Shown: positions 15,164 through 44,465 of the stretch, in pieces
How positions within the stretch are numbered: position 1 is the first letter of the stretch
How the letters are laid out: each line of letters begins with the position of its first letter
Assembly (NCBI GenBank): GCA_029953675.1
Contig: JAMWBK010000004.1
Location: 124,001-188,000 of the forward strand
Direction of reading: 5' to 3'
DNA length: 64,000 nucleotides
Origin: Rhodosorus marinus CCMP1338
Lineage: Eukaryota > Plantae > Rhodophyta
Made by a program: the position numbers and the translations under genes
Notes under the pieces: model-generated
The model's database searches: none
What the model saw: the letters and a program-made list of their open reading frames with translations, nothing else
Told to the model about the DNA's origin: nothing

Positions 15164-15381
15164 GAGGTTGAGGAGCCCGTAGACGGGGTTGAGGTTCCCG
15201 TATAATTCGTTGTAATTTCGGAAACCCGAGACCATGTTCTCAACAAGTAACGTCGCGCGAGCTTAAGCTGCTCCGTTACTCAGCCTAATGGGTGCCCCGT
15301 GGCAAATACCCATTTTCTATCTGCATCCCTACGCGGGGGCGCAGCAACTTCGGTTTTTCGCCAACTAAAGGACTGAAGATA
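15164..15381 (+). repeat. Tandem duplicate of the last coding repeat and 3' UTR of paralog 1
   Basis: Colinear with ~14890-15107 (...CCCGTATAATTCGTT...CGCGCGAGCTTAA...GCCAACTAAA.GACTGAAGATA). Confidence 0.85.
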
Positions 15382-15382
15382 C

Positions 15383-17285: not shown

Positions 17286-17378
17286 TGCGAGAGATGGCCT
17301 CCCATGCCGCGAAGGCGAGCGGTTGTCGTGCGCGGTGTGAGGGGAGAGTTGAGCAAGATTGCCTGAGCCGCACTGTGG
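17286..17378 (-). mobile_element. Inverted family A fragment continuing the preceding copy
   Basis: Reverse complement CACAGTGCGGCTCAGGCAATCTTGCTCAACTC...GGCCATCTCTCGCA is the segment that normally follows 17285 (HS.A.AILLNSPLTP..TARLRGMGGHLS). Confidence 0.8.
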
Positions 17379-17379
17379 G

Positions 17380-17406
17380 CGCTCTAGCCGACTGAGCTAC
17401 GCGGGC
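17380..17406 (-). tRNA. 27-nt tRNA 5' fragment (acceptor strand plus D arm; Ile/Lys-like), not a complete gene
   Basis: GCCCGCG-TA-GCTC-AGTCGGCTA-GAGC-G gives a canonical T8 A9, D stem GCTC/GAGC, D-loop AG..GG..A and G26. No anticodon arm or T arm follows. Confidence 0.7.
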
Positions 17407-17631
17407 TTTACTAGCATAGCTTGTACCCTATACTAACTTCACTGAGTAGGTCAACATACCCCCGTATATATCGAGCAGCGAGATGACTATGATACGTTTA
17501 CTTCTTCTATCTCTTGCGACTTGTCTTGGAATACCCCTCTCTAGTATGCCAACGCGTTATGGCTCACAACGATATCAAATGGTTTCGTCCAACTCTTCCA
17601 AGTCATTTAAGATTCAAAGCACCCAAAGCAG

Positions 17632-20316: not shown

Positions 20317-20665
20317 GAATTACCGCACCGGCAATATCAATTGGGTAATAAGCCCGAAAATAAACATAGAAAATACGAGCTGGATTCGAGGATAGTAGGC
20401 CAGATAAACACAGATTCAGGAAAAAACGATTGTTTTATATAAAACAAAAGCGGTGTTTTTGGCGGTAATAAAGGGTAATGTTGAATTACCCTTTGAATTA
20501 CCGCACCGGCAATATCAATTGGGTAATAAGCCCGAAAATAAACATAGAAAATACGAGCTGGATTCGAGGATAGTAGGCCAGATAAACACAGATTCAGGAA
20601 AAAACGATTGTTTTATATAAAACAAAAGCGGTGTTTTTGGCGGTAATAAAGGGTAATGTTGAATT
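20317..20665. repeat. Tandem duplication, period 178 bp, 2 copies
   Basis: 20317-20487 matches 20495-20665. The junction forms the hairpin AAAGGGTAAT-GTTGA-ATTACCCTTT. Confidence 0.95.
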
Positions 20666-20976
20666 CTCATCTACTGTAGCGGAATCGAGGATCTACCCCA
20701 ATCAAACAAATTCATTCAATGAAAAAAAGCTGTGTTCTGCAACGGAATCGACGTTCTGACCCGAACAAACACCTCGGTTTTGCCACCTCAAGAGGGGTTC
20801 TAAATCCATTGCCAATTACGTGATTCTGTGCTGGAATTGAGGGTACAAACCATCGTGGGCCGGCAAGAGTTGTAGGGATTGTGGAAAAAATTAACCAATA
20901 TTGCAGCAATACCAGGCTGATGCTGAGACAGGTTTTGTCGGTGCACTTTTAGCATAGATAGTGGTCTGATAAACTG

Positions 20977-22205
20977 TGGCGCATGAATGCCGCTTTGATC
21001 TTGTCCTGTACTAGTCTCCCCGAAACCGTTCAACCCCGTCTTCCTGACTGGCGAGCTGTATTTGACCGCTCTCGAGGCTCCGCCCCGGGGATTCGTCCTG
21101 CGCCTGAACCTGTTCTCGGGGAGGTTGACCCAGTGGTTGCCGCAGAAGAAGAAGTTCCAGTTGATCCTCCTGATGATTCCCATCGCGCTGGGAGCCGAGC
21201 TCAAGCACGCACGGATGCGCTGCAAAATATCCTTTCTTGGGACTTGCACCGTGCTGCATATGGCCGACTCCTCGCGCAGATGGTCTCATCTTCTCGCGCT
21301 CGCGCCCGCCTACGTAGTCTTGGAGGGGTTATTAGCTCTCAGTGGCTCATGACAGAACCAGCCTTTCCGCCACTCACACTGTCGGATTTCGAAGTGCGTA
21401 GTTCACTGCGCTTATACCTCGGCTTACATCAGCCCCCTTGGCCGTACGATATGGGTTCGTCGTGCCCTCTCTGCTCTCAGACTGAAGACAACGCAGATTT
21501 TGGCGCCCACCTGCTCGCTAGTTGCCCGGTGGTGAAAGGTGCTCGAACCCGCCGCCATACACGGATCTTGAACCTGTTATACTGGGAACTTCGGCCTATA
21601 GTCCGGCAAGCCGGTCTGGAAATCGAACGTGAGAAACCTTTACCCGTCGCGGACTTTCAAAATGATGAACGCCGTGTAGCCGACCTGGTGATCACCTGTG
21701 ACGACAGTCGCCGTACCACATACGTTGATCTTGCTGTTCCTAACCCTCAAGCTAGTCGTTATCTCCCGGCTGCGGGGGAGCGCCGTGGATCTGCCGCCGC
21801 CAGCATGGGACGCCGCAAAGAGATCAAATACGCGGGGGCTTTGTCTTCCCCTGGTGTTCGTGCTTCGGCACTAGCACATCGCTTGGTACCCCTGATCATT
21901 GAGTGCTTTGGGTTCATGGACTCTGTTGGTTCTCGCTGGCTTCGGGAGTTGTTCCGCGACCGTCTTCAATCGTTGTTTACCCGCTTAAGTTTCCTGCTGT
22001 GGCGCATGAATGCCGCTTTGATGTTGGAGGCGCGAGTACTTCGCCGCGCTTAGTCTTTTTTTCCCCTCGGGGTTTTTTTTTTCAGCCTCCGATTAAACCA
22101 TTCGTTCGTCGATGTTGGAGGCGCGAGTTCTTCGCCGCACTTAGTCTTTTTTTCCCTCGGGGTTTTTTCTTTCAGCCTCCGATTAAACCATTCGTTCGTT
22201 CGTTC
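20977..22205 (+). mobile_element. Nested family B pair: a 1.1-kb copy inside a short 3' fragment, with an outer 9-bp TSD
   Basis: TSD GATAAACTG at 20968-76 and 22206-14. The outer fragment ...GCCGCTTTGAT (to 20999) resumes as GATGTTGGAGG at 22111. The inner RLE ORF lies at ~21004-22053. Confidence 0.92.
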
Positions 22206-23459: not shown

Positions 23460-24471
23460 CTAAACGTTTACCAGGCCGCTCGATACTTATTTACCGCACG
23501 CAATCGGGCGTTCGTTTGTCGGACGGATATGACAACCCTATGCAAGCGTACAAAAAAATCTTTCCTAATCATGATCCGGAACTACTGAGAGTTGGTTTGG
23601 AAAAGGCGGACTACGTACTAAATTTCTGTCCGCCCACTGTGGACATTCTTTTATCGGACGGAGATGATATCCTTAATTGGGTGTACGAAACACATAATCA
23701 TCATCAGGAAGTACTGAGATTAGTTTTTTTAGAAGAGAACGGAGTCTGGAAGTTTAGTATCTAAACTTTTTCGGTCTAAGGTAGTAAAGTCCAGTATAAG
23801 CCAGTCTGCGCAAAAAATTGAATTGCGCTAGAAAGTTATGCAGCGTATAGTAAACGAGAGATTCCTAATGCCGGCTGCCATCAAAACTCTCTAATGAGCA
23901 CTGACTGCTACAGTTAGGAGCGTCAGGCAGTGTGGAGGTGACATTTTTGAACCAATTCATCGACACCCCCTAATTCGTTTGTGTCAAGCACACCGAAATG
24001 AACTAATTTTGCTTTTCAATTGTCACTCACCTCCCCTCAGAAACCCGATGGTGACGGCCAGCAGCGTCAGGCAGTGTGGGAGTCCTCAGGTCATTGCCCC
24101 GGGCGGAACGAGGTATATATCTCCGCCGAGGAATTATATGATTTCCGCGGCTGACATGCGCTTAATTTTTTTTTTGTTTTATCAAATTTGGGACACTACA
24201 GAGCCTTACGAGTGGACCCCATAGTCGCGACCTCGCCAGAATACCCGTTCACCATGTCCACAGTCTTTGCGCGGAAACGTCGTCTGGGGTTATAAGTAGA
24301 GCGGCGCAGACTAGATGCTGGGATGGGCTGAATAAGGGATATATGACAAGTCATATATTGCTAGAAGCGGGGATTGTGATAAGCGCTGAGAACTGAGTTT
24401 GGAGAGGAGTGAAAGAGTTTGTAGACCATCGGTAGAAGTTGATTATAACTTGTAGAAAGATCGGATTGAAC

Positions 24472-25029
24472 ATGATGAAATTGAATGCTTTCATTCTGGT
24501 CATCTTACTAGGGTTCACAATGGCGGTTCCATTGGTGCAGAAAGTTCATCTTGCTAAGAGAGTACACGCAGATGTTGAGGTTCCCGCACATCGAGAAGCC
24601 GCGGTTGAGGTTGAGGAGCGGGTAGCCCGGGTTCAGGTTGGGAAGGCCGGTGTTGAGGCTGAAATTGAACAGCCCATAGCACACGTTCAGGTTGAGAAGG
24701 CCAGAGCCGAGTTTGAGGTTCAGGAGGCTGTAGCCCGCCTTGGAGTTGTGGAGGCCGGAGATATGATCTGGGGTGCAGGGGACGCAGACGGCGAGATCGA
24801 GGAGGCCGTAGCCCGCCTTGGAGTTGTGGAGGCCGGAGATATGATCTGGAGTGCAGGGGACGCAGACGGCGAGATCGAGGAGGCCGTAGCCCGCCTTGGA
24901 GTTGTGGAGGCCGGAGATATGATCTGGAGTGCAGGGGACGCAGCCGGCGAGATCGAGGAGGCCGTAGCCCGCCTTGACGAGACCGGACTTCTCATCTGGG
25001 GTGAAGGGGACGCAGCCGGCGAGATCTAG
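24472..25029 (+). CDS. Secreted acidic repeat protein, paralog 2 (185 aa; stop probably premature)
   Basis: Signal peptide MMKLNAFILVILLGFTMA and 26-aa repeats EEAVARLGVVEAGDMIWSAGDADGEI. The TAG at 25027 replaces GAG at the start of repeat unit 5. Confidence 0.75.
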   Translation: MMKLNAFILVILLGFTMAVPLVQKVHLAKRVHADVEVPAHREAAVEVEERVARVQVGKAGVEAEIEQPIAHVQVEKARAEFEVQEAVARLGVVEAGDMIWGAGDADGEIEEAVARLGVVEAGDMIWSAGDADGEIEEAVARLGVVEAGDMIWSAGDAAGEIEEAVARLDETGLLIWGEGDAAGEI

Positions 25030-25150
25030 GAGGCCGTAGCCCGCCTTGGAGTTGAGGAGGCCGGAGATATCATATGGGGTGAAGGGGACGGAGCCGGCGA
25101 GATCTACGAGGCCGTAGCCCGCCTTGACGAGACCGGACTTCTCATCTGGG
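24721..25150 (+). repeat. 78/72-bp coding minisatellite, ~6 units
   Basis: Units start at 24721, 24799, 24877, 24955, 25027 and 25105. Confidence 0.92.
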
Positions 25151-25415
25151 GTTGGAAGGAGCCGGCGTTGAGGTTGCGGAGGCCGGAGCCGCCATTAGAG
25201 TTCCAGTATATAATCCGTTGTAATTATGGATATAACTAGAGTGAATCTGTTAACCGATTATCCTAGGTTGTTCTAGTGATGTCCCGCGAGCTTAAGCTGC
25301 TCGTATACGTAACCTAATAAAATCATATTCTTTGCAAATATTTTTTGAGCGAACAATGGACAGGTGGTTTGACTGGCTTCATTGGCTTGGCTATACTGGG
25401 CTAAAATGGCATAGA

Positions 25416-25693
25416 CTGGGCTTTACTAGCATAGCCTGAAGCGCTACGCAAGGCGTGAAAAGGAACTAAGAACTAGGGAGGGAAGCGTGCAAACCCAGGC
25501 GCCGATGGGGCGCCTCGGCAAGCATGCTGCTAGAATATCGCCACAGGGCGGCACTCAAACGCCGTAAAAGCGCCAAGTACTCAGCAGGATGCTCAGCGAA
25601 ACATTTCTACAACCACTCTGAACCCGACTTATTCACATGACACTGGCTTTATTAGCATAGCGCTTTAGGCTATGCTAAGCCAGTGTCATGTGA
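25416..25693 (-). mobile_element. Family A 3' fragment capped by a fold-back of a second 3' end
   Basis: 3' UTR and RLE C-terminus to ~25640, then the 61-bp palindrome at 25633-25693. Confidence 0.9.
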
Positions 25694-26329
25694 TTCCCTC
25701 GCGGCGGCGTACGATCATCTCCGCACACTGACATCCCTAGTCGGTCTCGAGTCAATCATGGGGTTATGTTAGTCTGGGGTTCAGCGTCGTCTGTCGCCAA
25801 GGACGACTAGGCGAATCCAGAAGCTCGCAGAGGCTCGAAGACTCCGCTACGAAAACAGCAGAAGAACACTGAAGGCCCTCAAGGTATAGTTGGTTCCATG
25901 AGGAGCCGATGCAGCGCCATTCGCCGGCCTTAAGACCAGAGAAATGTGGCACAACCCACCAAGCGCCAGAAGGCACCTGATGAGGATCTCCAGACCGGCT
26001 CCCCCCCTGCGAATATGCAGCAAATGAACAGCTGATCCAACGAGTATAATCCAAGTAGGGTTGTGCAGGAAATAAATAGCCCCCCCGGGCCGGGGAATAT
26101 AGGTTTGCCCACGCCGGTAGAATATAAAAATTTCAAAGCACCGGGAGGTGGAATTAAACCCCCCCCCCCCAAAAAGACCTTGTTTCGCGGGTTTACGCAC
26201 ACACAACCCTGCTGAGACATGAAATACAACCTTGGCGCAGGATTACTCGAGACGCACCGCGTTTGTTCCAAAGAGTTTTCTTGAGGACAACCAGTATTCA
26301 TGCGTCCTTGTTTTTCCCATCGAACGAAT

Positions 26330-26625
26330 GGTTTTTCCCATCGGGGTTTTTTCTTCGGTCTCCGATTAAACCAATTCAGTCATACGGCACAGCAAGAAAC
26401 TTAACGTGTAAACAACGAGGAAGAGACGGTCGAACGAATGGTTTAATCGGAGGCTGAAAAAAAAACCCCGAGGGGAAAAAAAGACTAAGCGCGGCGAAGT
26501 ACTCGCGCCTCCAACATCAAAGCGGCATTCATGCGCCACAGCAGGAAACTTAAGCTGGTAAACAACGATTGAAGACGGTCAGGGCGTTCGCGGAACAACT
26601 CCCGAAGAGACGGTCAGGGCGGCCG
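26330..26625 (-). mobile_element. Cluster of short family B 3' fragments
   Basis: A young minus-strand 3' end at 26431-26607 is abutted by diverged pieces. A plus-strand diverged UTR lies at ~26330-26380. Confidence 0.8.
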
Positions 26626-29682: not shown

Positions 29683-30897
29683 TTATAAGAACGATAAAGT
29701 AGAGTCGACTACCAACGTGCGCTGGGGGAAGGAGACATGGGAAGGGTAAAGTGTGAAGAGTAAAACCTGTATTTGCAAGTTTAAAGCCATGGAAATGAAG
29801 CTGGTTAGACGAGCTTTAGTGGCCTTGTTGCCGTTCGTGGTATGCACGGTTGTTTCTGGGGCAGTGGCTGGCGCAGCGGCTGGGGCTGCGGTGGTTGGTG
29901 GGATGATGCCAACGGTGGTTCCTGTAGCAGCGGCTGGAGCGGCGGCCGGAGCGGCGCTACCAACTGTACCACCCACAGTTGGGGGGACGTTACCTACTGA
30001 CGCTGCTGTGGTTGGTGGGATTCCACCAACTGACGCTGCTGTGGTTGGTGGGATTCCACCAACTGACGCTGCTGTGGTTGGTGGGATTCCACCAACTGAC
30101 GCTGCTGTGGTTGGTGGGATTCCACCAACTGACGCTGCTGTGGCTGGTGGGATTCCACCAACTGACGCTGCTGTGGTTGGTGGGATCCCCCCAACTGACG
30201 CTGCTGCGGTTGGTGGGATCCCCCCAACTGACGCTGCTGCGGTTGGTGGGATCCCCCCAACTGACGCTGCTGCGGTTGGTGGGATCCCCCCAACTGACGC
30301 TGCTGTGGTTGGTGGGATCCCCAACTGACGCTGCTGCGGTTGGTGGGATCCCCCCAACTGACGCTGCTGCGGTTGGTGGGATCCCCCCAACTGACGCTGC
30401 TGCGGTTGGTGGGATCCCCCCAACTGACGCTGCTGTGGTTGGTGGGATCCCCCCAACTGACGCTGCTGTGGTTGGTGGGATCCCCCCAACTGACGCTGCT
30501 GTGGTTGGTGGGATCCCCCCAACTGACGCTGCGGCGGTTGGTGGGATCCCCCCAACTGACGCTGCGGCGGTTGGTGGGATCCCCCCAACTGACGCTGCGG
30601 CGACGGTGGGGGCAGGTGCTCGGGCAGCAGCTGGGTCAGCGGCTGGAGCGGCGCTACCAACTGTACCACCCGCAATTGGAGGGACATTACCAACTGAGAT
30701 TGCCGCGGTTAGTTGAAGGATACCAACTGAGACTGCCGCGGCCGAGAGGGACACTAGCAGCTGAGGCTGCAGCGGCGACGGCAGTAGCTCGAGCAGTGCC
30801 TGAGTCAGCGGCTAGAGCGGCGGCTTGAGCGACCAACTTTACCACCCGCAGTTGGGGACACTACCAATTGACACAGCGGCGGTTTATTTCTATTCAT
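29683..30897 (-). pseudogene. Frameshifted Ala/Pro/Thr/Gly-rich mucin- or AGP-like repeat gene; strand uncertain
   Basis: The minus strand gives SAAPAAAPAAATGTT and (ASVGGIPPTTA)n with a hydrophobic C-terminus, and several frameshifts. The plus strand is also open, with a signal-like start. Confidence 0.45.
29997..30612. repeat. 33-bp quasi-palindromic minisatellite, 18 full units plus one partial
   Basis: Unit CTGACGCTGCTG(T/C)GGTTGGTGGGAT(T/C)CC(A/C)CCAA. Unit 10 (30294) lacks 2 C. Confidence 0.97.
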
Positions 30898-31057
30898 AGA
30901 TGTTTCTGTTGATTATCAAAATGGACGGAATTACTGGCATAGGCTGAAGGAGCGATATGCTCAAAACGTAATTTACTTTGAACAAATTTATTGCTGAAAT
31001 AAATCGTACTATATTGGTAGAACTACCACTTGGATGGATGGATTAACCACCATAGTC

Positions 31058-31321
31058 GCTGAGCGACACTTAAACGGCTTAGGAATCCCAGGTATTCAAC
31101 CGGATGGTCAGTAAAACATTTCCAAACCACTCCGAGCTGGACACTTACAGATGCCCAAAGCTTTTCACAATGAGAGGTTGGAACCTGTGACAACGGCCAT
31201 ATGCACACTGGATACTGGCCATGCTCTCACTGAGAGTCTCAGCATACCGTCGTTTCTTCAGTCGGCGAAGTACAGAAGCTGCTGCCTCCCGGCGAAGAGC
31301 GGCGGAGGGGAGTAGGTACTT
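31058..31321 (-). mobile_element. Diverged A-like RLE C-terminal fragment
   Basis: YLLPSAALRREAAASVLRRLKKRRYAE...HRFQPLIVKSFG. Confidence 0.75.
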
Positions 31322-31380
31322 AACACTGGACTGGACTTTACTAGCATAGCCTGAAGCGCTACGCAAGGCGTGAAGATGAA

Positions 31381-34300
31381 CTAATACCTAGGGAGGGAAG
31401 CATGCAACCCCAGGCGCCGATGGCGCGCCTCGGAAAGCATGTCGCTGGAATATCGCCAAAGGGAGACACTTAAACGCCTCAAGAGCGCCAAATATTCAGT
31501 AGGATGCTCAGCAAAACATTTCCGCAACCACTCTAAACCCGACTTATCCACGTGACCAAAGCTTTCCACAATGAATGGCTGGAACCGGTGAGAGCGACCC
31601 TCAGCGCAAGGCAGACTGGCCATGCTCTCAGCATACCGTCGTTCCTTAACTCTTCGAAGGGCTGAAGCCGCGGCCCCCCGGCGGCGGGCGGCTGCGGTGA
31701 GGTGGGCGCTGGCCACGGGGCAGGTAATCGCAAGGTCCACATATGTTGAGCGTCTGGCAGCAGCGTCGGAGACGAGGAGATCGGCTATACAACGGGGCGG
31801 TGCAGAGTCCGAGATGGATCTGGGCAGTTCCGACTCAACCTCAACCGTATGCCCTATCCGAGTCAAAGATTCGCTGAGGATGTACTTGAGGCGAGTGTGA
31901 CGCCTCGTACGGAGACCTCGCAACAGTCCGCAGGAACCCAGGAAGTGGTAGCCACAAGCGTCAATCCGGCTCTCACATCCCTGACAGAAAGACGGCCGAT
32001 TAGAGTGCCACGGAGCCTGTGGCAAACCGAGATAGATCCGTGCGGCAGAACGGAACTGGAAAGCATCGAGACGATGACTCAATGACGACGGTAGAGTGGT
32101 TAACCACAAGTGCGAGAGGTGGCCTCCCATGCCGCGGAGACGAGCGGCAGTGGTAGGCGGCGTGAGAGGAGAATTGAGCATGACTGTGTGAGCGGCACTG
32201 TGTTGGCCCCAGGTGAGGCTATGTTGAATCACATCAGTGTGGGAGCTCCACAATCGGCTCAAACCCGGGTAGTCTGCAACAGGGGACCCGGGGCTAGCCT
32301 CTCCGTCATCGGCAAGAACTCGGTCGAGGGGACAATCCTCAATCGCTTCAGCTCGTCCCCATAACAGCTCCCCCCAGGAACGAAAGCCGGACCGATTTGC
32401 GTCCGGCACGGCGTTGCACCTCCTGAACGCGTGTTGAAGACCATCATAAATTGTCAAAAGCGGGGGCGGCAGGGTCACTGGATCCTCGTTGGTCAAAGCT
32501 CGAGCCAAGAGGCAGGCACTTCGCATCCGGAAGGTCACCAACGTTCGCAGCGCGGTAGCCCAGGAGGCAACCGCCGCTGGCGAGCATACCAGCCCACGGT
32601 CTGCGACGCCGAATCCCCCTAATCGCAACGGTAGAGCGATCTGTGCACGAATAAAGTCCCTGTCGGGAGCAGCTTCAAGATCGAGGGGCTCATCCAAGAG
32701 CGTTCCCCAGTGTTGCAGGGTCATTTCGTCGGCTTTAGCCGCGATCCACGAGCCCCAAGCTGGAGGCAGGCTGCGCAACCAGTAGTTGAGTCTGGGACCG
32801 GCACAAAAGCGGGAAAGCAAGCAGGCCGATTGCAGCATGCTGTCGGGTAGGTGCTCAATGGCGTCGGTGAGTTGCTTGTGCCGTGCCAAAACTCGCTCGC
32901 AGGATGCTTGGACAAAGTTGTCAGTCCCCAATCCGACGCCGTGGTGTTCGAACCCTTCACGTTCGCTGATTAGTCGCAGAGTGGGTGGCAGAGAGGCCAG
33001 CGACACGTCCCTCGGGGGGAGAAAGCGACATTTTTCTGTTTCCACAGTCAAACCGACGCGACGTGCAATCGCTTCGATCGCGGTCAGTCCCCTAGCCAGG
33101 GTGTCAGGGGTGCCCAGCAATGTTACGTCATCGTGGTACGCGCAGATTCGAAGATCCGAGACCTCAGTCGAAAGACGTAAAAGTACGAGCTGTAGTGCAC
33201 AGGCATGAAGAAGAGGTCCGCAAGGGTCGCCTTGTTGGACGCCAGTATGTGCTTGAAAAACAGTGCCCTCCGTTGTCAAGTAGGGGAAGCTCTCCCCTCC
33301 GTAAATACCCGATAGAAACGGCCACGCCTCCGGAAACACACGTCGGAGCACCTCTAGCGCATGCGTCCGCGACACGCTGTTGAATGCGTTCCGGAAATCA
33401 ACCACCAAGACTCCCCACTCCGGCCTACTGAATGAATGGTTTAATCGGAGGCTGAAAAAAAAAAACCCCGAGGGGAAAAAAAGACTAAGCGCGGCGAAGT
33501 ACTCGCGCCTCCAACATCAAAGCGGCATTCATGCGCCACAGCAGGAAACTTAAGCGGGTAAACAACGATTGAAGACGGTCAGGGCGTTCGCGGAACAACT
33601 CCCGAAGCCAGCGAGAACCAACAGAGTCCATGAACCCAAAGCACTCAATGATCAGGGGTACCAAGCGATGTGCTAGTGCCGAAGCACGAACACCAGGGGA
33701 AGACAAAGCCCCCGCGCATTTGATCTCTTTGCGGCGTCTCATGCTGGCGGCGGCAGATCCACGGCGCTCCCCCGCAGCCGGGAGATAACGACTAGCTTGA
33801 GGGTTGGGAACAGCAAGATCAACGTATGTGGTACGGCGGCTGTCGTCACAGGTGATCACCAGGTCGGCTACACGGCGTTCTGGCGCGTTCTAGCTCGATC
33901 CCATGGGTGATCAGTTCGCAACCCCCAGAAAATCCCACCCCTACTTGCAAGGGCGCCATAAAAGCTGTGACGCGCTGGCGAAGGCGCTGGCATAGCCACC
34001 TCCCGGCTAACTTCCGTAGGCTCTCCACCATCCCGATCGGCCGGAGACGCGGGTGGGCCGGCTGGTGGTCAGGTTTCGTGAGCAAGCAAAGCTGTGCCTG
34101 CCGGAGATGTTCCCATGGCGCGGACGCACCCGATACGCCCTGGAACAACTTGTTAAGGATCCTCAGAAGCGCGCTCTGGCCAGGCTGGCTCAGGGCCTGC
34201 AATAGCTCTGTTCTTAGTCCGGAGGGTCCAGGACAGCGTCCCCGACGCGAGGTACGAAGCAAATCCTCCAGGTCAGACTCACTGAGGGTCAGATCGATGC

Positions 34301-34904
34301 GAAACCTGGCCAACTCCGGACGGTCCAAGAATACCTCGAATTCAGGGGACAAATCCACGTCGGACTCAGGGAACAAAGACGACACCGTCTGGGCGAGACT
34401 ATCATCGTAGGGGAGGACAGGCGCCTGGCCCTCCAAAACCCGCGCCGCTCGACTTAAATCGCCCACTGCTACCAATTTCTGTACTCCAGCTGGCACGGGC
34501 GACACTGTGCCATGCCGAGTCCGACGGGCGGATGGTGCTGACGACGCCAAATAGCTGCGCTGTAGTACTTCGAAGTCTCCCTTCAAGAACAGGGCCAGTC
34601 GGTCTCGTACTCGCCATCTGCGCTCCGATGTGTGAATGGGGGCCAGAATCAGGCGCGGCATGACCCCCAGAAAAACCCAAATGACTGTGTCCCGAATGTT
34701 GCGAGCCAGGCTCGTGAAGATGAAATCGAGAATGGTTCCAGCTACCAGAAGGTCTCCACGAGGAAGGACGACTGGGGGAATGCCCCCACGGAGGGGAAGC
34801 GAGCCTCCTTCCAAAGAAATCCACCGCCGGAGCCAACTCCGAAAACGCGTACGCCAAATGCCCCAGTCTCCGCCCTCCTTCAGGACATAAGACTGTAGAT
34901 CCAT
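31381..34904 (-). CDS. Family A ORF2 (RT-CCHC-RLE, ~1020 aa once the insert is removed); disrupted
   Basis: GRCPGPSGLRTE, LRPIGM, LQVGVG, VDFRNAFN, GVQQGDPCGP, AYHDD, HHGVG, CQGC..H..SC, RHTR, IADL, YVDLA, VKERRY, PFIVESFG. Confidence 0.9.
33430..33879 (-). mobile_element. 450-bp family B 3' fragment nested in A ORF2, with a 2-bp duplication (AG)
   Basis: Runs from (E)RRVADLVITC to LEARVLRRA*, then UTR and CATTCATTC tail. Confidence 0.93.
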
Positions 34905-34935
34905 AGGCTGCGACCTCGCAGCCGTGCCTGGAGCG

Positions 34936-36212
34936 CTAATCGTGCTTCTCCCCCTTAGACCCGGGGGAGTCGGTCCTCGCTCTCTTACCTCCTATCCGCA
35001 CCAAAGTCGTGAGCCTCCCACTCCGCGAGGCTCGCGGAACGGATCCCGCGGGCTTCAGCAAAGTAACCTGGGCGTCCTCCACCGCCATGCCCTCAGTCTG
35101 CTCCCCTGCCTCACCACTCTCGCTGGAAGTAGTGCTGGAAGCAGAGCCCTCCAAAATCCCCACCCGCTGCAGCTCTGTCTTGTAGCGCGAAGTCAGCACA
35201 AGTCGCCTCTCCAGATCGAAGAAACTGGAAACCGCCATGCGCAGGTGACGAGGGCCCGACCGGAACCGCGCCAACAAGATCCTCTCAAGGCGCTGAATCC
35301 GTAGCCAATGGATCGCTGCCGCCTTCACGCTGCTCTCATGCTCAGAGAGCCCTGCCGTTTCTCCCGGAGACAGGAAATTGCCCGAGAAACGGTCAAAATC
35401 GAAGTGCAAAACCACCTGCGGGTTGCAGCGCAGCCACCGGGCGCTCTCAGGCCACTGCTCGGTAGGCTTCGCCAGCAAGGCCTCCAGGTACTTGGCGGCG
35501 GTTGCGGAGACCAAAAACAGCACATCGCGGCCCTCATAGTTTGCGAAGAAGAAATCACCCCGGCTGCACCCTAACGATTCCGCAAAAGTGTCCCGGAAGT
35601 CTCGCATAGACGGAACCTGTCCTCGTGTAGTCTGGGGCCGGACATTTCGCACCCACAGAAATTGGAGAGTGGTCTCCACAGGTCCATCCTGAGGCTCGCG
35701 AGATGGTATGAAACGGAGCATAGCCGCCGTACGTGTGGCAGTGGTGCCCTTCCGCAAGACTGATGCGTACGAAGCGCCCCCTTGCGGCCACCACGTGCCC
35801 CCGAAGTAGCCGGGAGCTGGTGACGACCTGAGGGCTGGTCCAAGAGAGGGAAGTCCACAGCTGCAGTCTCCTCCACACCGGTTGCCGCACAGTCACCACC
35901 ACCATTGCCTCGAGTCCCCGAGCGCTGAAGCGCGTTTTGGCCCGGCCTGCCGCTCCCCAACGTCGTACTGTCCCGCGCAGAAGCAACAGCCCTCGCCTGT
36001 CCCGGGACAGGTTCATGTTGATTGACCGGATGTTGACTGCCTTCAGCCAACGCTGCCACTCTGGGGCAATTCAAATTCTCGTCCGAATTTGAATTTGACC
36101 TGGCCAGCAATCCCGATTCCAGCCCACCTAGCTTCTGGGTGAGCTGAGGGAGCACTCCACGATCACTCGCAGCCATGATCAGGCTGGTGACAGCGGAGAT
36201 AAGTGCACGCGT
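34936..36212 (-). CDS. Family A ORF1 (5'-truncated, one frameshift near the G5 run at ~35780), no recognisable domain
   Basis: Tracked frames 35571-36236 and 34936-35757 join to give a protein colinear with the ORF1 at 1-566. Confidence 0.7.
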
Positions 36213-39200
36213 GGCTTTATTGGACTTTACTAGCATAGCCTGAAGCGCTACGCAAGGCGTGAAGATGAACTAATAACTAGGGAGGGAAGCATGCAACCCC
36301 AGGCGCCGATGGCGCGCCTCGGAAAGCATGTCGCTGGAATATCGCCAAAGGGAGACACTTAAACGCCTCAAGAGCGCCAAATATTCAGTAGGATGCTCAG
36401 CAAAACATTTCCGCAACCACTCTAAACCCGACTTATCCACGTGACCAAAGCTTTCCACAATGAATGGCTGGAACCGGTGAGAGCGACCCTCAGCGCAAGG
36501 CAGACTGGCCATGCTCTCAGCATACCGTCGTTCCTTAACTCTTCGAAGGGCTGAAGCCGCGGCCCCCCGGCGGCGGGCGGCTGCGGTGAGGTGGGCGCTG
36601 GCCACGGGGCAGGTAATCGCAAGGTCCACATATGTTGAGCGTCTGGCAGCAGCGTCGGAGACGAGGAGATCGGCTATACAACGGGGCGGTGCAGAGTCCG
36701 AGATGGATCTGGGCAGTTCCGACTCAACCTCAACCGTATGCCCTATCCGAGTCAAAGATTCGCTGAGGATGTACTTGAGGCGAGTGTGACGCCTCGTACG
36801 GAGACCTCGCAACAGTCCGCAGGAACCCAGGAAGTGGTAGCCACAAGCGTCAATCCGGCTCTCACATCCCTGACAGAAAGACGGCCGATTAGAGTGCCAC
36901 GGAGCCTGTGGCAAACCGAGATAGATCCGTGCGGCAGAACGGAACTGGAAAGCATCGAGACGATGACTCAATGACGACGGTAGAGTGGTTAACCACAAGT
37001 GCGAGAGGTTGCCTCCCATGCCGCGGAGACGAGCGGCAGTGGTAGGCGGCGTGAGAGGAGAATTGAGCATGACTGTGTGATCGGCACTGTGTTGGCCCCA
37101 GGTGAGGCTATGTTGAATCACATCAGTGCGGGAGCTCCACAATCGGCTCAAACCCGGGTAGTCTGCAACAGGGGACCCGCGGCTAGCCTCTCCGTCATCG
37201 GCAAGAACTCGGTCGAGGGGACAATCCTCAATCGCTTCAGCTCGTCCCCATAACAGCTCCCTCCAGGAACGAAAGCGGGACCGATTTGCGTCCGGCACGG
37301 CGTTGCACCTCCTGAACGCGTGTTGAAGACCATCATAAATTGTCAAAAGCGGGGGCGGCAGGGTCACTGGATCCTCGTTGGTCAAAGCTCGAGCCAAGAG
37401 GCAGGCACTTCGCATCCGGAAGGTCACCAACGTTCGCAGCGCGGTAGCCCAGGAGGCAACCGCCGCTGGCGAGCATACCAGCCCACGGTCTGCGACGCCG
37501 AATCCCCTAATCGCAACGGTAGAGCGATCTGTGCACGAATAAAGTCCCTGTCGGGAGCAGCTTCAAGATCGAGGGGCTCATCCAAGAGCGTTCCCCAGTG
37601 TTGCAGGGTCATTTCGTCGGCTTTAGCCGCGATCCACGAGCCCCAAGCTGGAGGCAGGCTGCGCAACCAGTAGTTGAGTCTGGGACCGGCACAAAAGCGG
37701 GAAAGCAAGCAGGCCGATTGCAGCATGCTGTCGGGTAGGTGCTCAATGGCGTCGGTGAGTTGCTTGTGCCGTGCCAAAACTCGCTCGCAGGATGCTTGGA
37801 CAAAGTTGTCAGTCCCCAATCCGACGCCGTGGTGTTCGAACCCTTCACGTTCGCTGATTAGTCGCAGAGTGGGTGGCAGAGAGTTCAGCGACACGTCCCT
37901 CGGGGGGAGAAAGCGACATTTTTCTGTTTCTACAGTCAAACCGACGCGACGTGCAATCGCTTCGATCGCGGTCAGTCCCCTAGCCAGGGTGTCAGGGGTG
38001 CCCAGCAATGTTACGTCATCGTGGTACGCGCAGATTCGAAGATCCGAGACCTCAGTCGAAAGACGTAAAAGTACGAGCTGTAGGGCACAGGCATGAAGAA
38101 GAGGTCCGCAAGGGTCGCCTTGTTGGACGCCAGTATGTGCTTGAAAAACAGTGCCTTTATTAGCATAGCCTACAGCGCTACGCAAACCGTGAAAAGGAAC
38201 TAAGAACTAGGTAGGGAAGCGTGCAAACCCAGGCGCCGATGGCGCGCCTCGGCAAGCGTGCTGCTCGAATATCGCCACAGAGAGACGCTTACCGCAAAAG
38301 TTCCAAGTATTCAACAGGATGCTCAGTGAAACATTTCCGCAACCAATCCTAACCCGACTTCTCCACGTGACCAAAGCTTCCACAATGAAAGGCTGGAACT
38401 TACTTCTTAGCTCAGAAGCCAGCTCATTAGTGAACTCAAGGAAAAATGTCAAAGCTAGCCTTCGCATACTAAAAAAACATTGGCTCTACAATCTGTGGCG
38501 AGCGCCCACCTCACGGCTGCCGCCCGCCGACGAGGCGCAGCCGCTTCGGCTCTTCGACGAGTGAAGGAACGACGGTATGCTGAGAGCATGGCCAGTCTGC
38601 CTTACGCCGAGGGTCGCTCCCACCAGTTCCAGCCTTTCATTGTGGAAAGCTTTGGTCATGTGGATAAGTCGCGTTTAGAGTGGTTGCGAAAATGTTTCGC
38701 TGAGCATCCTACTGAGTACTTGGCGCTTTTGCGGCGTTTGAGTGCCGCCCTGTGGCGATGTTCTGGGCTTTACTGGCTTTATTAGCTTAGCCTAAAGCGC
38801 TACGCTAACCGTGAAAAGGAACTAAGTACTAGGTAGGGAAGCGTGCAAACCCAGGCGCTGATGGCGCGCCTCGGCAAGCATGCTGCTCGAATATAGGCAC
38901 AGAGAGACACTTAAACGCCGCAAAAAGTTCCAAGTATTCAACAGGATGCTCAGTGAAACATTTCCGCAACCACTCCAAACCCGACTTCTCCACGTGACCA
39001 AAGCTTTCCACAATGAAAGGCTGGAACCGGTGTGAGCGACCCTCAGCGCGAGGGAGGCTGGCCATACCCTCAGCATACCGTCGTTCCTTCACGCGGCGAA
39101 GGACCGAAGCAGCTGCTCCCCGGCGGCAGGCGGCAGCCGTGAGATGGGCGCTTGCCACAGGGCATGTAATCGCGAGGTCAACATATGCTGAGCGTCTGGC

Positions 39201-42031
39201 GGCGGCATCGGAGACGAGGAGATCTGCGATACAGCGGGGCGGTGCCCTATCTGAGACCGATCTGGGTAGTTTCGATTGCACCTCAACCGTATGCCCTACC
39301 CGAGTCCAACATTCGCTGAGAATGCACTTGAAGCGAGTGCGACGCCTCGTACGAAGACATCTCAACAGTCCGCATGAACCTAAGAAATGGTAACCACAAG
39401 CATCGATCCGACTCTCACATCCCGGACAGAAAGACGGCCGATTAGAGTGCCACGGAGCTTGTGGCAAACTCAGGTAAATCCGTGCGGCAGAGCGAAACTG
39501 GAAGGCATCCAGACGGTGACCAGTAAGGACGGCAGGGTCGTTAACCACAAATGTGATAGATGGCCTCCCATGCCGCGGAGGCGAGCGGCGGTGGTAGGCA
39601 GTGTGAGTGGAGAGTTGAGCAAGATTGCGTGAGCGGTACTGTGTTGGCCCCAGGTGAGGCTATGTTGAATCACATCAGTGCGCGAGCTCCACAATCGGCT
39701 CAGACTCGGGTAATCGGCAAGCGGTGACCCGGGGCTAGCTTCCCCCTCGTCGGCGAGTACTCTGTCGATGGGAGAGTCCTCGAGCGCCTCAGTTCGTCCC
39801 CATGACAGCTCCTTCCAGGAGCGAAATCTGGATCGGCTCTCGTCCGGCACGGCGTTGCACTTACTGAACGCCTGTTGCAGAGCATCGTAGATACTCAAAA
39901 GTGGCGGCGGAAGGGTCACGGGGTCTTCGCTAGTCAGTGCTCTAGCCAAAAGGCAAGCACTTCGCATCCGAAAACTCACCAAGGTGCGAAGCGCGGTAGC
40001 CCAGGAGGCGACCGCCGCAGCCGAGCATACGAGTCCACGGTCGGCCACTCCAAATCCGCCTAATCGTAAAGGTAGGGCAATCTGGTCACGAATTAGGTCC
40101 CTGTCAGAAGCCGCTTCCACATCCAGGGGTTCATCCAAGAGCGTTCCCCAGTGCTTCGCCTCGTCCGCCTTGGGTGGCATCCACGAGCCCCAGCGCGGTG
40201 GAAGGCTTCGCAGCCAGTAATTCAGTCGAGGGCCGGCACAAAAGCGGCAGAGCAGGCAAGCCGATTGGAGCATGCTGTCCGGTAGGCGCTCAATGGCGTC
40301 GGTGAGCTGCTTATGGCGCGCTAAAACTCGTTCGCAAGAGTCTTGGACAAAGTTGTCACTCCCCAAACCCACGCCATGGTGCTCGAGCCCCGCAGGTTCA
40401 CCAAAGGCTCGGAGACTAGGTGGCAGGGAGCCCCTCGAAACTTCACGCGGGCCGAGAAAACGGCATTTTTCGGGTTCCACGGTTAGACCTACTCCACGTG
40501 CGATTGCTTCGACCTGGGTCAATCCCCGAGCCAAGTGCTCAGGGGTGCCCAGCAACGTCAAGTCGTCGTGGTAGGCACAGATGCGAAGATCCGGCACCTC
40601 AGCCGCCAGGCTCTGTAGCACGAGCTGCAAGGCACACGCGTGAAGGACAGACCCACACGGATCACCCTGTTGAACGCCAGTACGTGCTGCAAAAACAGAG
40701 CCCTGCGTTGTCAAGTAAGGGAGGCTCCCCCCTGCGTAAATACCGGATAGGAACGGCCACGCCTCCGGGAATACCCTTCGAATCACCTCCAAAGCATTCG
40801 TCCGCGAGACGCTGTTGAACGCGTTACGGAAGTCAACCACCAAAGCGCCCCAATCCGGCCTACTGGCTCGCTCGAGCTTTTATCGCATGGATGATTAGTT
40901 CGCAACCCCTGGAAAATCCCAATCCTACCTGCCAAGGCGCCATAAAGGCGGTGACTCGCTGGCGTAGGCGCTGGCATAGCCACTTCCGGCGAGTTTCCGT
41001 AGACTCTCGACCATGCCGATCGGCGGAGACACGGGTGTGCCGGCTCGTGGCCGGGTTTCGTTAGCAAGCAAAGCTGTGCCCGTGGGCTTTACTAGCTTTA
41101 TTAGCATAGCCTAAAGCGCTACGCAAACCGTGAAAAGGAACTAACTAGCACAGCCTGAAGCGCTAAGCAAGGCGTGAAAAGGAACTAAGAACTAGGGAGG
41201 GAAGCGTTCAAACCCAGGCGCCGATGGCGCGCTTCAGCAAGCATGCTGCTAGAATATCGCCACAGGGCGGCACTCAAACGCCGCAAAAGCCCCAAGTACT
41301 CAGTAGGATGTTCAGCGAAACATTTCCGCCACCACTCTGAACCCGACTTTGCTTTATTAGCATAGCCGAAAACGCTACGCAAACCGTGAAAAGGAACTAA
41401 GAACTAGGTAGGGAAGCGTGCAAACCCAGGCGCCGATGGCGCGCCTCAGCAAGCATGCTGCTCGAATATCGCCATAGAGAGACACTTAAACGCCGCAAAA
41501 GTTCCGAGTATTCAAAGGGATGCTCAGTGAAACATTTCCGCAACCACTCCAAACCCGACTTCTCCACGTGACCAAAGCTTTCCACAATGAAAGGCTGGAA
41601 CCGGTGGGAGCGACCCTCAGCGCGAAGAAGACTGGCCATACCCTCAGCATACCGTCGTTCCTTCACGCGGCGAAGGGCCGAAGCAGCTGCTCCCTGGCGG
41701 CAGGCGGCAGCCGTGAGATGGGCGCTTGCCACAGGGCATGTAATCGAAAGGTCAACATATGCTGAGCGTCTGGCGGCAGCATCGGAGACGAGGAGATCTG
41801 CGATACAGCGGGGCGGTGCCCTATCCGAGACCGATCTGGGTAGTTCCGATCCCACCTCAACCGTATGCCCTACCCGAGTCAAACATTCGCGGAGAATGTA
41901 CTTGAAGCGAGTTTGACGCCTCGTACGAAGACCTCTCAACTGGAGTTTTAAGTAACATAGCCTGATGCGCTACGCAAGACGTAAAAGGAAACTAGGGACT
42001 AGGGAGAAGAGCATGCAAGCCCAGGCGACGG
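36213..42031 (-). mobile_element. Stack of eight truncated family A pieces
   Basis: 36213-38155 (-), 38156-38399 (-), 38493-38764 (+), 38765-41083 (-), 41084-41144 (-), 41145-41350 (-), 41351-41940 (-) and 41941-42031 (-, diverged). Each minus-strand piece carries its own 3' UTR. Confidence 0.93.
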
Positions 42032-42426: not shown

Positions 42427-43107
42427 CTACTTGCGAGTGAACTTGACCGTGCCAACCGGCACGCCGCCGAACATCGTACCGAGGATGGAGACAATCTTGT
42501 CATAGGGCTTAGTTGCCTTATCCTTGGACGTAAACTTCTTCCCAGAGTCGGTTCCAGCATCCCACACGCTAAGGTTTCCCTTGTACTTCTTAACCCACTT
42601 ACCTTTGCTGTCGCACAACTCCACATTGTCCCATCCAGTGTACCAGTCCGGGCTCGGGGCAAGCATAGATATACCGGAGCTCATGGATCGGTAGCCGTCA
42701 AGCTTAATAAGGAACGCAACTTTCTCAGTTCCATCTGGGGTTGGTCCTTTCGAGGCATCATACCAATACACGTTGCGTCCGAGTTGTGCCTTGAGCTCTT
42801 TCAGCAGAGCCTTGTTGTTACCGGTTTCAGCAACATCCTGGACACCCTTTGTGGCGAAACCTCCTGGAGTCCACATGGTATATCCGTCACCATGGGAGCA
42901 AACAGTTGTCGGAGAGAAGTGACCGTCTGCAGGGTATGCCCCAGGGTGGGTCATGCCGGTCCAAACATACTTCACCACCACTTTGTAGATTGCCTTTCCT
43001 TTGCAGGTCTTATGATGCGCTCTCGACGAAGGGTCAATCTGGACGGAGGACGCGAGCGCGCATGCTGCGAGCACGACCAAAAAGAAAACGAACACCTTGA
43101 AGTTCAT
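42427..43107 (-). CDS. Secreted Spondin_N-domain protein, 226 aa
   Basis: ATG at 43107, signal peptide MNFKVFVFFLVVLAACALA, and Spondin_N motifs HPGAYP..GHFSP, SH..Y.MW.PGG, VAETG, SMLAPSPDW, VELC and WDAGTDSG. Confidence 0.92.
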   Translation of the reverse strand: MNFKVFVFFLVVLAACALASSVQIDPSSRAHHKTCKGKAIYKVVVKYVWTGMTHPGAYPADGHFSPTTVCSHGDGYTMWTPGGFATKGVQDVAETGNNKALLKELKAQLGRNVYWYDASKGPTPDGTEKVAFLIKLDGYRSMSSGISMLAPSPDWYTGWDNVELCDSKGKWVKKYKGNLSVWDAGTDSGKKFTSKDKATKPYDKIVSILGTMFGGVPVGTVKFTRK

Positions 43108-44465
43108 TGCTTTGTTCCTTGCAACCTTCTCCGCTACTTTCAAATCACCGACTGCTGCTGCTTGTCCTCAGTCGCTGGAGATCTAGATCATCCGTGCTCG
43201 GTGGTTCGGTATTTATACCTTCTCGCCATATTCGAATGGATCCCATCCACAATCCAGTGTGGCATGAGCAACATCTGTAGGACGGCAAGAAACCCAACAA
43301 TGTCAATATCTCTAATCAAAACGATCATATGCCGTCGATCGCCGTCAGATCTCGCGTTAGAGCACTGAGTCTCACAAGCGACTTAACACGACCAAAGACA
43401 AACCTAAACAAAAAGCCGAAAAAAGAAAAGGGAATCGAGATCCACGCATAACAAATATCGGGAATTGCCCTTGTCAAATCACGCCAACGATCCTTCCCCC
43501 CTGCCTGGATTCGGCATGAGATCTAGTTCGATAGTCACCGGGCATTCAACCCCCCTAAGAAGACTCTGACCGCCGTCTGATTTTCACCGAATTTGCTTCT
43601 CAGGAAACCAAATTTTCCAAAACTTGGTGTCAAGAGAAGCAATCACCCGAAGATATGCGTTCCACACCAAGCATAACAGGTGGACTGCTTGCTTCCCTTC
43701 GTCACCACAATCGCTCCACCACCTCTAGAAAATGACTCGAAAAAGGGGTGGGCGAGGGAATATTCTCTCCTGTCTTCTCCAACAGCTGTAACCCCCTTTT
43801 GGCGAGTACCGCTTTATGAGGGCCAACTTCTGTTCTCGATATCTACTTTATTCTCAATTGAAGGGGATCGGATGCACTAGAGACCCAAACCCAAGTCCGT
43901 TGTGCAGCGAAGTTAGTTTTTTTCGTCTCTCCTATTCTTCACCATCCACCACCCCCTCTTCCCCCCTTTGCAAAACCATTGGCCCTTTTTTTGGAGCCCT
44001 CCAAGATTTTCTCCTCTAAACACCTTTCCCGGCCTGCGCTTAGCGCGGCTTGGTTTTGACGGTTTCAAAGTAAACTTGGAAACCGACCCTGTTTTATGGA
44101 CAAAAAAATATGGGGCTAAATATCTAAATCGAGGACTTAAGTCCCCTTCGTTCGTGCTGTGGCTCCCGTCAAATGCTACACCGTATATGCCTTCTGATGT
44201 GAAGAGGGGAAGAGCGATCTTCATGGCTACGTGGTGGTCTTTTTATTCGTTCACTGCGTTTTTTTTGGTTTTCACCCTCTGATTAAACGAATTTTTTTGT
44301 TATCCGCTTAGTAGTATCTTTTTACACCTCCACAAATTCAATTCATTTCATTAGCATCGTGGAGTGTGCGAGTAAGAGTTTCTTCCAGTTTTTCCTCGTC
44401 ACTCAATAATTCCGGGATTGTAATTTCTACCCTCTATTTCAGCAAATTTCTCTTTGATTGACAGT

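Follow-up and report, generated by a model that had tools for sequence, protein, structure and literature searches.

How does a head-to-tail stack of 5′-truncated retrotransposon copies form: by a reverse transcriptase chaining several RNAs in one integration, or by successive insertions into copies already resident? The question is raised by positions 31325–42031 of a 64-kb window (the whole stretch of DNA analysed here) from the nuclear genome of the red alga Rhodosorus marinus, assembled to chromosome level from Nanopore and HiFi reads (PMC10250338). The window spans record positions 124,001–188,000 of the 3.19-Mb contig JAMWBK010000004.1; record position equals window position + 124000, and the stack lies at record 155,325–166,031. 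A sequence-only reading of the locus had proposed chained template jumps as the origin of much of the stack. We conclude that it was probably built mainly by same-orientation insertions of one retrotransposon family (family A) into the final ~14 nt of A copies already in place.

Family A belongs to the R2-like non-LTR retrotransposons and encodes an RT and a C-terminal restriction-like endonuclease (RLE). The RT matches RVT_1 (E = 1.3e-11), and the solved structures closest to it are R2 proteins (E = 2e-9). Downstream of the RT, at the C terminus, a CCHC motif precedes a PD-(D/E)xK (E..D..D..K) restriction-like endonuclease. In an alignment of A, the second family (B) and five relatives, residues C55, C58, H68, C73, H84, E105, D123, D138 and K168 are invariant, and a profile of the C-terminal domain matches the endonuclease region of R2 structures (E = 3.5e-11). 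Family B has a single intact ORF of 1163 aa, whose sole Pfam match is RVT_1 (E = 1.6e-9). A Pfam search of the N-terminal ORFs of A and B, regions that are divergent and in A broken, gave no zinc-finger or Myb match. Consistent with an RLE-type element, there are no LTRs and no AP-type endonuclease, and no terminal direct repeats were seen flanking the copies. The hallmarks of TPRT are present in the form of 5′ truncation, intact 3′ ends and short, variable TSDs: eleven A pieces have a common 3′ end and differing 5′ truncation points, and TSD lengths in the window range from 3 to 12 bp. The A element lacks poly(A); its 3′ UTR is ~62 nt long and ends in a 12–14-nt motif that is unique and not a simple repeat. 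In a search for homologues of the A ORF, the best relatives were metagenomic proteins (≤34% identity, the closest being 34% identical), and no Rhodosorus copies came up.

The minus-strand, same-orientation series of 5′-truncated A pieces at 31325–42031 is real. From its upstream (5′) end, where host DNA is joined at 42031/2, it reads as follows.

41941–42031, minus strand: piece G, 3′-terminal 91 bp of a divergent A copy (type III) with tail GTTACTTAAAACTCCA; upstream (5′) limit of the stack
41351–41940, minus strand: piece F, 5′-truncated type I A copy spanning ref 4289 to its tail, GCTAATAAAGC
41145–41350, minus strand: piece E, type IIa A copy from ref 4668
41095–41144, minus strand: piece D, 50-bp type I piece, 3′ UTR only, in the tail of E and bracketed by (C)TAG
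41083–41093, minus strand: 5′ copy of the TSD of C, AGTAAAGCCCA, a portion of the type II tail of E
38775–41083, minus strand: piece C, 2.3-kb type I A copy in the tail of E, ref 2115 to tail
38764–38774, minus strand: 3′ copy of the TSD of C, AGTAAAGCCCA
38495–38763, plus strand: inverted, tailless type IIa A fragment, ref 4497–4765, interrupting the stack
38400–38494, no strand: 95-bp spacer with no significant A or B similarity
38156–38399, minus strand: piece H, type I A copy from ref 4628
36222–38155, minus strand: piece B′, 1.9-kb type IIb A copy in the tail of H, ref 2945 to tail GCTAGTAAAGTCC
36213–36221, minus strand: displaced remainder of the type I tail of H, AATAAAGCC, including the 3′ TSD copy of B′
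31325–36212, minus strand: copy 1, longest A copy, type IIb, ~4.44 kb minus the B insert
33430–33880, minus strand: family-B 3′ fragment, ~450 bp, refB 3424–3875, 99% identical, nested within the RT of copy 1
31040–31324, minus strand: piece K, older A-like RLE-coding fragment, ~71% identical; downstream (3′) end of the stack

Copy 1 encodes the N-terminal part of the RT at 33846–34904 and the C-terminal part together with the RLE ORF at 31381–33408, and its tail is GCTAGTAAAGTCCAGT followed by CCAGT. The B fragment enters its RT at ..CCAG^TAGG.. with a TSD of 2–3 bp; a 10-bp TSD around this insert was a BLAST overlap artefact, the alignment giving 2–3 bp. Piece C is without the B insert and has one frameshift, as does B′. 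The stack had been described as gapless, but it is broken by the inverted fragment, the 95-bp spacer and the family-B fragment in copy 1. An A tail does meet the 5′ end of the next piece at each of the six junctions reported (36212/3, 38155/6, 41083/4, 41144/5, 41350/1 and 41940/1). At 36212/3 and 41083/4, however, the tail in contact is the displaced remainder of an older copy of another subfamily and not that of the adjacent piece.

The mixing of subfamily UTRs is borne out, with at least three A 3′-UTR types intermixed in the stack. Type I pieces (F, D, C and H) end in GCTAATAAAGCC, type II pieces (E, B′ and copy 1) end in GCTAGTAAAG[C/T]CC, and G represents a third type. The extension AGTAAAGCCC is missing from type I copies outside type II tails and so belongs to the target and not to the RNA.

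TSDs produced by self-tail targeting would consist of tail sequence and be easily overlooked; mixed subfamilies reveal them. The tail of E is interrupted after GCTAG and resumes at 41094–41084 and 38774–38764, and the type I piece C is flanked on both sides by the identical 11-mer AGTAAAGCCCA (41093–41083 and 38774–38764), the terminus of a type II tail; the final A of its 5′ copy could equally be the first base of C. Piece D divides the same tail into GCTAG and TAGTAAAGCCC, with a duplication of 3–4 bp. The tail of H is interrupted after GCTAATAAA(G) and resumes at 36221–36213. Its type II insert, B′, is flanked by AATAAA(G) at 38161–38155 and 36221–36215, and the 9 nt past the B′ tail, AATAAAGCC, form the terminus of a tail of type I, the type of H. 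Other-subfamily tail of 9–11 nt is present at both 36213–36221 and 41084–41094. When D and C are excised, the tail of E is rebuilt as GCTAGTAAAGCCCAG, identical to that of its closest relative at 25414; when B′ and copy 1 are excised, the tail of H is rebuilt as GCTAATAAAGCCAGT, identical to other type I copies. Since excision restores the subfamily-specific old tails exactly, the stack probably arose mainly from independent insertions.

The earlier description of these junctions as lacking a visible TSD is accurate for G/F, F/E and H/copy 1, where the upstream tail is complete and no convincing duplication was found (at best CCA for copy 1). It does not apply to C, B′ and D, whose TSDs mean that the jump model fails there; the largest internal pieces bear TSDs of their own made of a neighbour's tail, contrary to the claim that chained jumps wrote much of the stack.

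Further nestings of both families occur elsewhere in the window.

6911–7236, plus strand: type I A copy (6923–7224) with a 12-bp TSD, AGTAGAACCATG (6911–6922 and 7225–7236)
20974–22201, plus strand: family-B copy (21004–22107) within an older B fragment, TSD GAT
25414–25700, minus strand: type IIa A copy (25414–25646) with a short type I tail fragment before it
26420–26615, minus strand: family-B 3′ piece (26603–26432) with a 12-bp TSD, GACCGTCTCTTC (26615–26604 and 26431–26420)

The A copy at 6923–7224 resides in an old, diverged A 3′-UTR remnant. Its empty site aligns with the A 3′ UTR with a score of 21 (shuffles: mean 7.3, maximum 14) and was therefore cut at the tail position of C. This copy, C, D and B′ all sit within A tails, and every nesting is co-oriented with the resident copy. 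Judged by its sequence record, family B follows the pattern of family A, nesting into its own resident copies. The B piece at 26603–26432 lies in a diverged resident B-like copy, and the 12-bp GACCGTCTCTTC on each side of it contradicts the assignment of 26430/1 to the same TSD-less junction type. The host parts around the B copy at 21004–22107 (20974–21003 and 22108–22201) are contiguous in B. Three B copies are nested in B copies, with two of the nestings ≤3 bp apart.

As read from the DNA, then, duplications, subfamily-discordant tail remainders, exact tail rebuilding, a shared site at an unlinked locus and B-in-B nesting are all demonstrated. We propose that a new copy would enter a resident tail at GCT^A[A/G]TAAAGCC.., within the predicted preferred target motif GGCTATGCT^A(A/G)TAAAG(C)CC(AGT) at resident A tails. 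The first nick, priming reverse transcription, would fall directly 3′ of GCT and the second 3–12 nt further downstream; with the nicks so placed, the new copy, mostly 5′-truncated, would lie between a complete-looking old tail and its duplicated tail piece. Repeated rounds across subfamilies would yield a head-to-tail truncated stack with host DNA absent between its pieces. Recognition of the site by the endonuclease or by DNA binding may provide the specificity, or else the 3′ end of the RNA may pair with the nicked target, and a duplex containing GGCTATGCTAGTAAAGCCCAGT is a candidate nick substrate under this tail-targeting model. The previous suggestion that the endonuclease targets 5′ junctions of existing copies comes near, although the target would be the resident 3′-terminal tail. 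Because the sample is one 64-kb window (~13 A tails and ~8 B tails), the motif is based on 4–6 events, and because element tail and target look alike, boundaries are uncertain by 1–3 nt. The G/F, F/E and H/copy 1 junctions need blunt or non-canonical events under the tail-insertion model, and the 3–12-bp spread in TSD length also counts against it.

Serial template jumping, in which the RT, on arriving at the 5′ end of one A RNA (often a broken one) during a single round of TPRT, moves on to the 3′ end of the next and so chains several A RNAs in one integration, is an unlikely source of the stack, whether as a whole or at G/F, F/E and H/copy 1 only. C, D and B′ carry their own duplications beside other-subfamily tail remainders, the tails of E and H are interrupted internally and not at an RNA 3′ end, and the 9 nt of type I tail between B′ and copy 1 are unexpected for a jump from one type II RNA to another. 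Neither sub-stack is bracketed by a TSD (none around 38764–42031 or 31325–38399), and the process would call for numerous short, broken RNAs whose 3′ ends are intact. H also looks older than copy 1 and B′, which fits H as host, although the counts are small: 3 private substitutions and 2 indels per 244 bp for H (read from the alignment, few sites), and 4 and 5 private substitutions per 1085 bp for copy 1 and B′, respectively, relative to a subfamily consensus from five copies. Only at G/F, F/E and H/copy 1 is a complete acceptor 3′ end joined directly to a donor 5′ end, the next piece following without a clear TSD, so template jumping is possible there. R2-type RTs switch templates in vitro, and insertions driven by R2 in human cells include tandem 3′-to-5′ junctions and snap-back joins (PMC11371274). 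Copy 1 may be full length, the state for which jumps from end to end are expected, and inverted or palindromic joins at 25640–25700, 17285/6 and 9465/71 show irregular cDNA events in these families. A combined history, in which the TSD-less junctions and the inverted or palindromic joins represent template jumping and cDNA snap-back and the locus records tail-homing together with jumping in vivo by a red-algal R2-like lineage not described before, is likewise unlikely. The result is no evidence for serial template jumping in vivo.

The near-identity of the neighbours B′ and copy 1 (99.4% over 1.9 kb by BLAST) bears on two further explanations. Assemblies err in repeat clusters, yet a repeat mis-joined or expanded in the long-read assembly is extremely improbable here: 17 differences and distinct flanks separate B′ from copy 1, the pieces vary in subfamily, length and truncation point, mis-joins would not make orderly TSDs at junctions, and the assembly is chromosome-level, from Nanopore and HiFi reads (PMC10250338). 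Rearrangement of A copies after insertion, by gene conversion, unequal crossing-over or segmental duplication, is also very unlikely to have produced the tandem arrangement. An A copy at 16040 begins exactly at the position of the B/A junction of copy 1, hinting at a composite duplication, but unequal exchange leads to in-register units, not to six different 5′ truncations with complete tails, and would not produce the short tail duplications around each piece.

Self-nesting into resident 3′ tails is already known from Cnl1 and Zepp. Cnl1, a CRE-clade LINE of the RLE type, has mostly 5′-truncated copies, like A, and its self-nesting, same-orientation arrays have counterparts in A and B. Its arrays are subtelomeric beside telomere repeats, whereas the A stack lies 155–166 kb into a 3.19-Mb contig, and no telomere-type repeat arrays were found in the 64-kb window. 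The hosts differ too, Cryptococcus for Cnl1 and a red alga for A, whose best relative is just 34% identical. In Dong/R4-type (TAA)n, Waldo, Mino, Kibi, Koshi, MoTeR and SART/TRAS elements, the target is similar to the 3′ end of the element itself; old copies thereby supply new targets, and arrays arise. LINEs of the microsatellite and telomere-repeat kind target simple repeats, whereas A appears to use a unique 12–14-nt motif and, unlike them, its subfamilies target one another's tails. Zepp is L1-like, with a poly(A) tail, and not an RLE element; A, without poly(A), has a defined 14-nt tail motif instead. In Chlorella and Coccomyxa, these algal LINEs cluster as nested truncated copies (PMC3446292), one within another as in the A stack. 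R2 and A have homologous RT and RLE domains, and both show TPRT from a sequence-specific nick, variable junctions and truncation at the 5′ end. R2 proteins are known to make tandem and snap-back joins (PMC11371274), whereas the main A junctions carry TSDs and are not products of a jump; R2 differs further in that the target of A would be the element's own tail.

The window adds a pair of R2-like, endonuclease-bearing red-algal families, one of them (B) with an intact 1163-aa ORF, and the locus shows how 'gapless' stacks of truncated LINEs are correctly read. A short, defined, self-matching target could help in studying RLE site choice, and the locus could serve as a natural example of transposons confining themselves to a 'safe' niche that consists of dead copies of their own kind.

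Besides the three sites named above, 38763/4 is also an inverted or palindromic join. Near 25646/7, the type I tail fragment is duplicated in inverted form, making a palindrome at ~25640–25700. The inverted fragments have no account under the tail-insertion model. The one at 38495–38763 is type IIa and 93% identical to E over 98 bp. A simple snap-back joining it to H was rejected, as the fragment reaches further 5′ than H and is of another subfamily, and twin-priming of both from the same RNA is unlikely because the two differ in subfamily. The 38400–38494 spacer was considered as an old A tail and is not significant as such (score 10; shuffles mean 7.7, maximum 15). Neither Rfam nor tRNA scanning gave a match in the window, a tRNA-like appearance at 17378–17402 was tested and rejected, and an exact-protein look-up returned no record for the B ORF (two start choices) or a neighbouring Spondin_N ORF. 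Of the ORFs looked up in this way, an ABC-transporter ORF alone was on record.

The stack at 31325-42031, a minus-strand head-to-tail pile of truncated copies of retrotransposon family A, appears to have grown chiefly through independent insertions that homed to the 3' tails of resident copies. Our analysis covers one window of the nuclear long-read assembly (Nanopore and HiFi) of the red alga Rhodosorus marinus CCMP1338 (GCA_029953675.1; PMC10250338), at the level of assembled sequence rather than reads; adding 124000 to a window position gives the position on the 3.19-Mb contig JAMWBK010000004.1. The retrotransposon-rich stretch spans ~6.9 to 42 kb of the window.

Based on the combination of a reverse transcriptase (RT) with a C-terminal domain of the restriction-like endonuclease (RLE) type, both family A and a second family, B, are R2-like non-LTR retrotransposons with an RLE. 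Copy 1, the longest A copy (31325-36212, minus strand), encodes an RT (RVT_1 match, E = 1.3e-11) whose best matches among solved structures are R2 proteins. The C-terminal domain of A contains invariant C-x2-C...H-x4-C, RH, E, D, D and K residues common to B and distant relatives, and a profile of this domain matched the endonuclease region of R2 structures (E = 3.5e-11). Family A has a 3' UTR of ~62 nt with a short terminal tail lacking poly(A), and its closest database protein is unnamed and only 34% identical. Family B shares this architecture (~38% identical to A) and contains an intact 1163-aa ORF with RT and RLE (10140-13631, plus strand), suggesting that it may still be active. A weak match to the N-terminal ORF of A at the window start (12-143, minus strand; 43% over 44 aa) probably belongs to another A-like family running past the window edge.

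Pieces of the stack in element sense, from high to low coordinates, resolved by BLAST against copy 1
42031-41941, minus strand, A piece G
41940-41351, minus strand, A piece F
41350-41145, minus strand, A piece E
41144-41095, minus strand, A piece D
41083-38775, minus strand, A piece C
38495-38763, plus strand, inverted A fragment
38400-38494, 95-bp spacer between the inverted fragment and H, without significant similarity to A or B
38399-38156, minus strand, A piece H
38155-36222, minus strand, A piece B'
36212-31325, minus strand, copy 1
31324-31040, minus strand, K, an older A-like piece (71% identical)

Several 3'-UTR types are mixed in the stack. The type I tail, GCTAATAAAGCC(AGT), is found in F, D, C, H and two plus-strand copies, and the type II tail, GCTAGTAAAG(C/T)CC(AGT), in E and the copy at 25414 (IIa) and in B' and copy 1 (IIb); G represents a third type. 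A sequence-only reading had reported this mixing and six junctions (36212/3, 38155/6, 41083/4, 41144/5, 41350/1 and 41940/1), and both observations stand. Its description of a single gapless series does not, as the inverted fragment and the 95-bp spacer break the stack and copy 1 holds a 450-bp family B 3' fragment (~33430-33880) that is absent from copy C.

Outside the stack, a type I copy at 6923-7224 is bracketed by AGTAGAACCATG (6911-6922 and 7225-7236), indicating that family A makes target-site duplications (TSDs) as long as 12 bp and that its tail ends ...AATAAAGCC. The rebuilt empty site of this copy aligns to an A 3' UTR with a score of 21 (shuffles: mean 7.3, maximum 14), which places the insertion in an old decayed A tail directly after the tail-motif GCT. 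Within the stack, C is bracketed by AGTAAAGCCCA (41093-41083 and 38774-38764), the terminal 11-mer of a type II tail, whereas C itself is type I. D (type I) interrupts a type II tail, with GCTAG of E on one side, TAGTAAAGCCC on the other and 3-4 bp duplicated. B' (type II) likewise interrupts a type I tail, between GCTAATAAA(G) of H and AATAAAGCC, with 6-7 bp duplicated. Removing D and C in silico, leaving one TSD copy each, restores the tail of E as GCTAGTAAAGCCCAG, identical to its closest relative at 25414, and excision of B' and copy 1 restores the tail of H as GCTAATAAAGCCAGT, identical to other type I copies. The extension AGTAAAGCCC is missing from type I copies outside type II tails (F, H and the copies ending at 7224 and 9464), and is therefore target sequence lying outside the type I RNA. 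The three best-resolved events have the new tail and then A(G/A)TA(A/G)A.., immediately past GCT in the resident tail; D joins 1-2 nt upstream of this point, and 5' joins fall 2-12 nt downstream of it.

The sequence-only reading had seen no TSDs and proposed that chained template jumps wrote much of the stack. The duplications of C, D and B' and of the unlinked copy at 6923-7224 contradict the former and leave the latter unsupported; its fallback, an endonuclease that targets junctions of existing copies, is essentially right, as the insertions sit in resident 3' tails. R2 proteins do perform end-to-end jumps in vitro and produce tandem and snap-back joins in cells (PMC11371274). Three junctions, G|F, F|E and H|copy1, join a complete upstream tail directly to the next piece, and a search for duplications there found none convincing, at best CCA for copy 1. 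These junctions may represent insertions at the very tail end with little or no stagger; a contribution of end-to-end template jumps to them is unlikely, and template jumping deserves very little credence as the source of much of the stack, where C, D and B' carry their own TSDs.

Under tail homing, every insertion would re-form a tail and hence a fresh target. The predicted nicks are a first-strand one on the bottom strand, following GCT, and a second one 7-12 nt farther downstream, with varying amounts of sequence lost where the ends join; GGCTATGCTAGTAAAGCCCAGT and GGCTATGCTAATAAAGCCAGT are the predicted targets for nicking. The specificity could reflect recognition by the protein, or else pairing between the RNA 3' end and nicked DNA. 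A plausible order of insertion is K, then H, then copy 1 and B' in the lower sub-stack, and G and/or F, then E, then C and D in the upper. Private substitutions (4 in copy 1 and 5 in B' over 1085 shared sites; 3 substitutions and 2 indels within 244 bp in H) agree weakly with this order.

Family B behaves like A, nesting into resident B copies. Its junction at 26430/1, also thought to lack a TSD, lies in a diverged resident B-like copy and has a 12-bp TSD, GACCGTCTCTTC (26615-26604 and 26431-26420). An older B fragment, in halves at 20974-21003 and 22108-22201 that directly adjoin each other in B, encloses the B copy at 21004-22107 (TSD GAT), and another older B fragment (halves 10106-10166 and 15457-15549; TSD TGTT) is split 3 bp away. 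All A and B nestings have the same orientation as the resident copy. The 5.3-kb segment enclosed by the latter halves (10167-15456) includes the intact B ORF and 1.7 kb of non-TE DNA, which may be a 3' transduction; its 27-bp repeats resemble 24223-24640.

Inverted or palindromic joins recur at 9465/71, 17285/6, 25640-25700, 26383/4 and 38763/4, indicating that irregular cDNA events do occur in both families. They comprise a tail or truncated copy followed by an inverted 3'-region fragment of the same family, and at 25640-25700 the tail-to-5'-end junction itself is duplicated and inverted. These joins resemble snap-back but could not be fitted to its simple form, and twin priming from the same RNA is an unlikely source of them. 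A type IIb A copy (16040-17285, plus strand; 98.4% identical to copy 1) has as its first base exactly the one at which the B fragment of copy 1 ends (TAGGCCGG), and a B tail lies 490 bp upstream, suggesting a composite master element of A with B or a shared hot spot. Two diverged ~20-bp tail-only A units, CTATGCCATTTTAGCCCAGT and ATAGCCAAGCCAATGAAGCCAGT, follow the tail of the 25414 copy in tandem (~25380-25413, minus strand), and another tail-only piece (17403-17420, minus strand) lies upstream of a truncated A fragment; such pieces may be extreme 5' truncations or products of repeated initiation.

Judged by its sequence, the stack works like known self-nesting LINE systems, and this kind of behavior is already known. 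Green-algal Zepp LINEs similarly form clusters of nested copies (PMC3446292). The R. marinus stack differs from such systems, including Zepp, in having a red algal host, in lacking telomere association within this window, and in the A target, a defined ~14-nt tail shared across subfamilies. Scans of the window found no telomere-type repeat arrays, tRNAs or Rfam families.

Host genes and in-frame tandem repeats, the latter each in a large ORF without a Pfam match
2738-6772, plus strand, intact, intronless ABC (MDR-type) transporter gene (1344 aa)
14505-14936, 27-bp unit repeat
24668-25126, 78-bp unit repeat
29861-30734, 33-bp unit repeat
42427-43143, Spondin_N ORF, host gene
57392-57607, 24-bp unit repeat
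59695-60900, 18-bp unit repeat
62698-63543, Sec16-like ORF, host gene

The old A tail remnant and the 302-bp A insertion at 6923-7224 lie ~110-450 bp beyond the stop codon of the ABC transporter, probably within its 3' UTR region. The long-repeat ORFs probably encode repetitive host proteins, and the 27-bp repeat family occurs at two sites (14.5 kb and 24.6 kb). Otherwise unique DNA contains, at 20317-20665, a perfect tandem duplication of 178 bp (2.0 copies, 100% identity).
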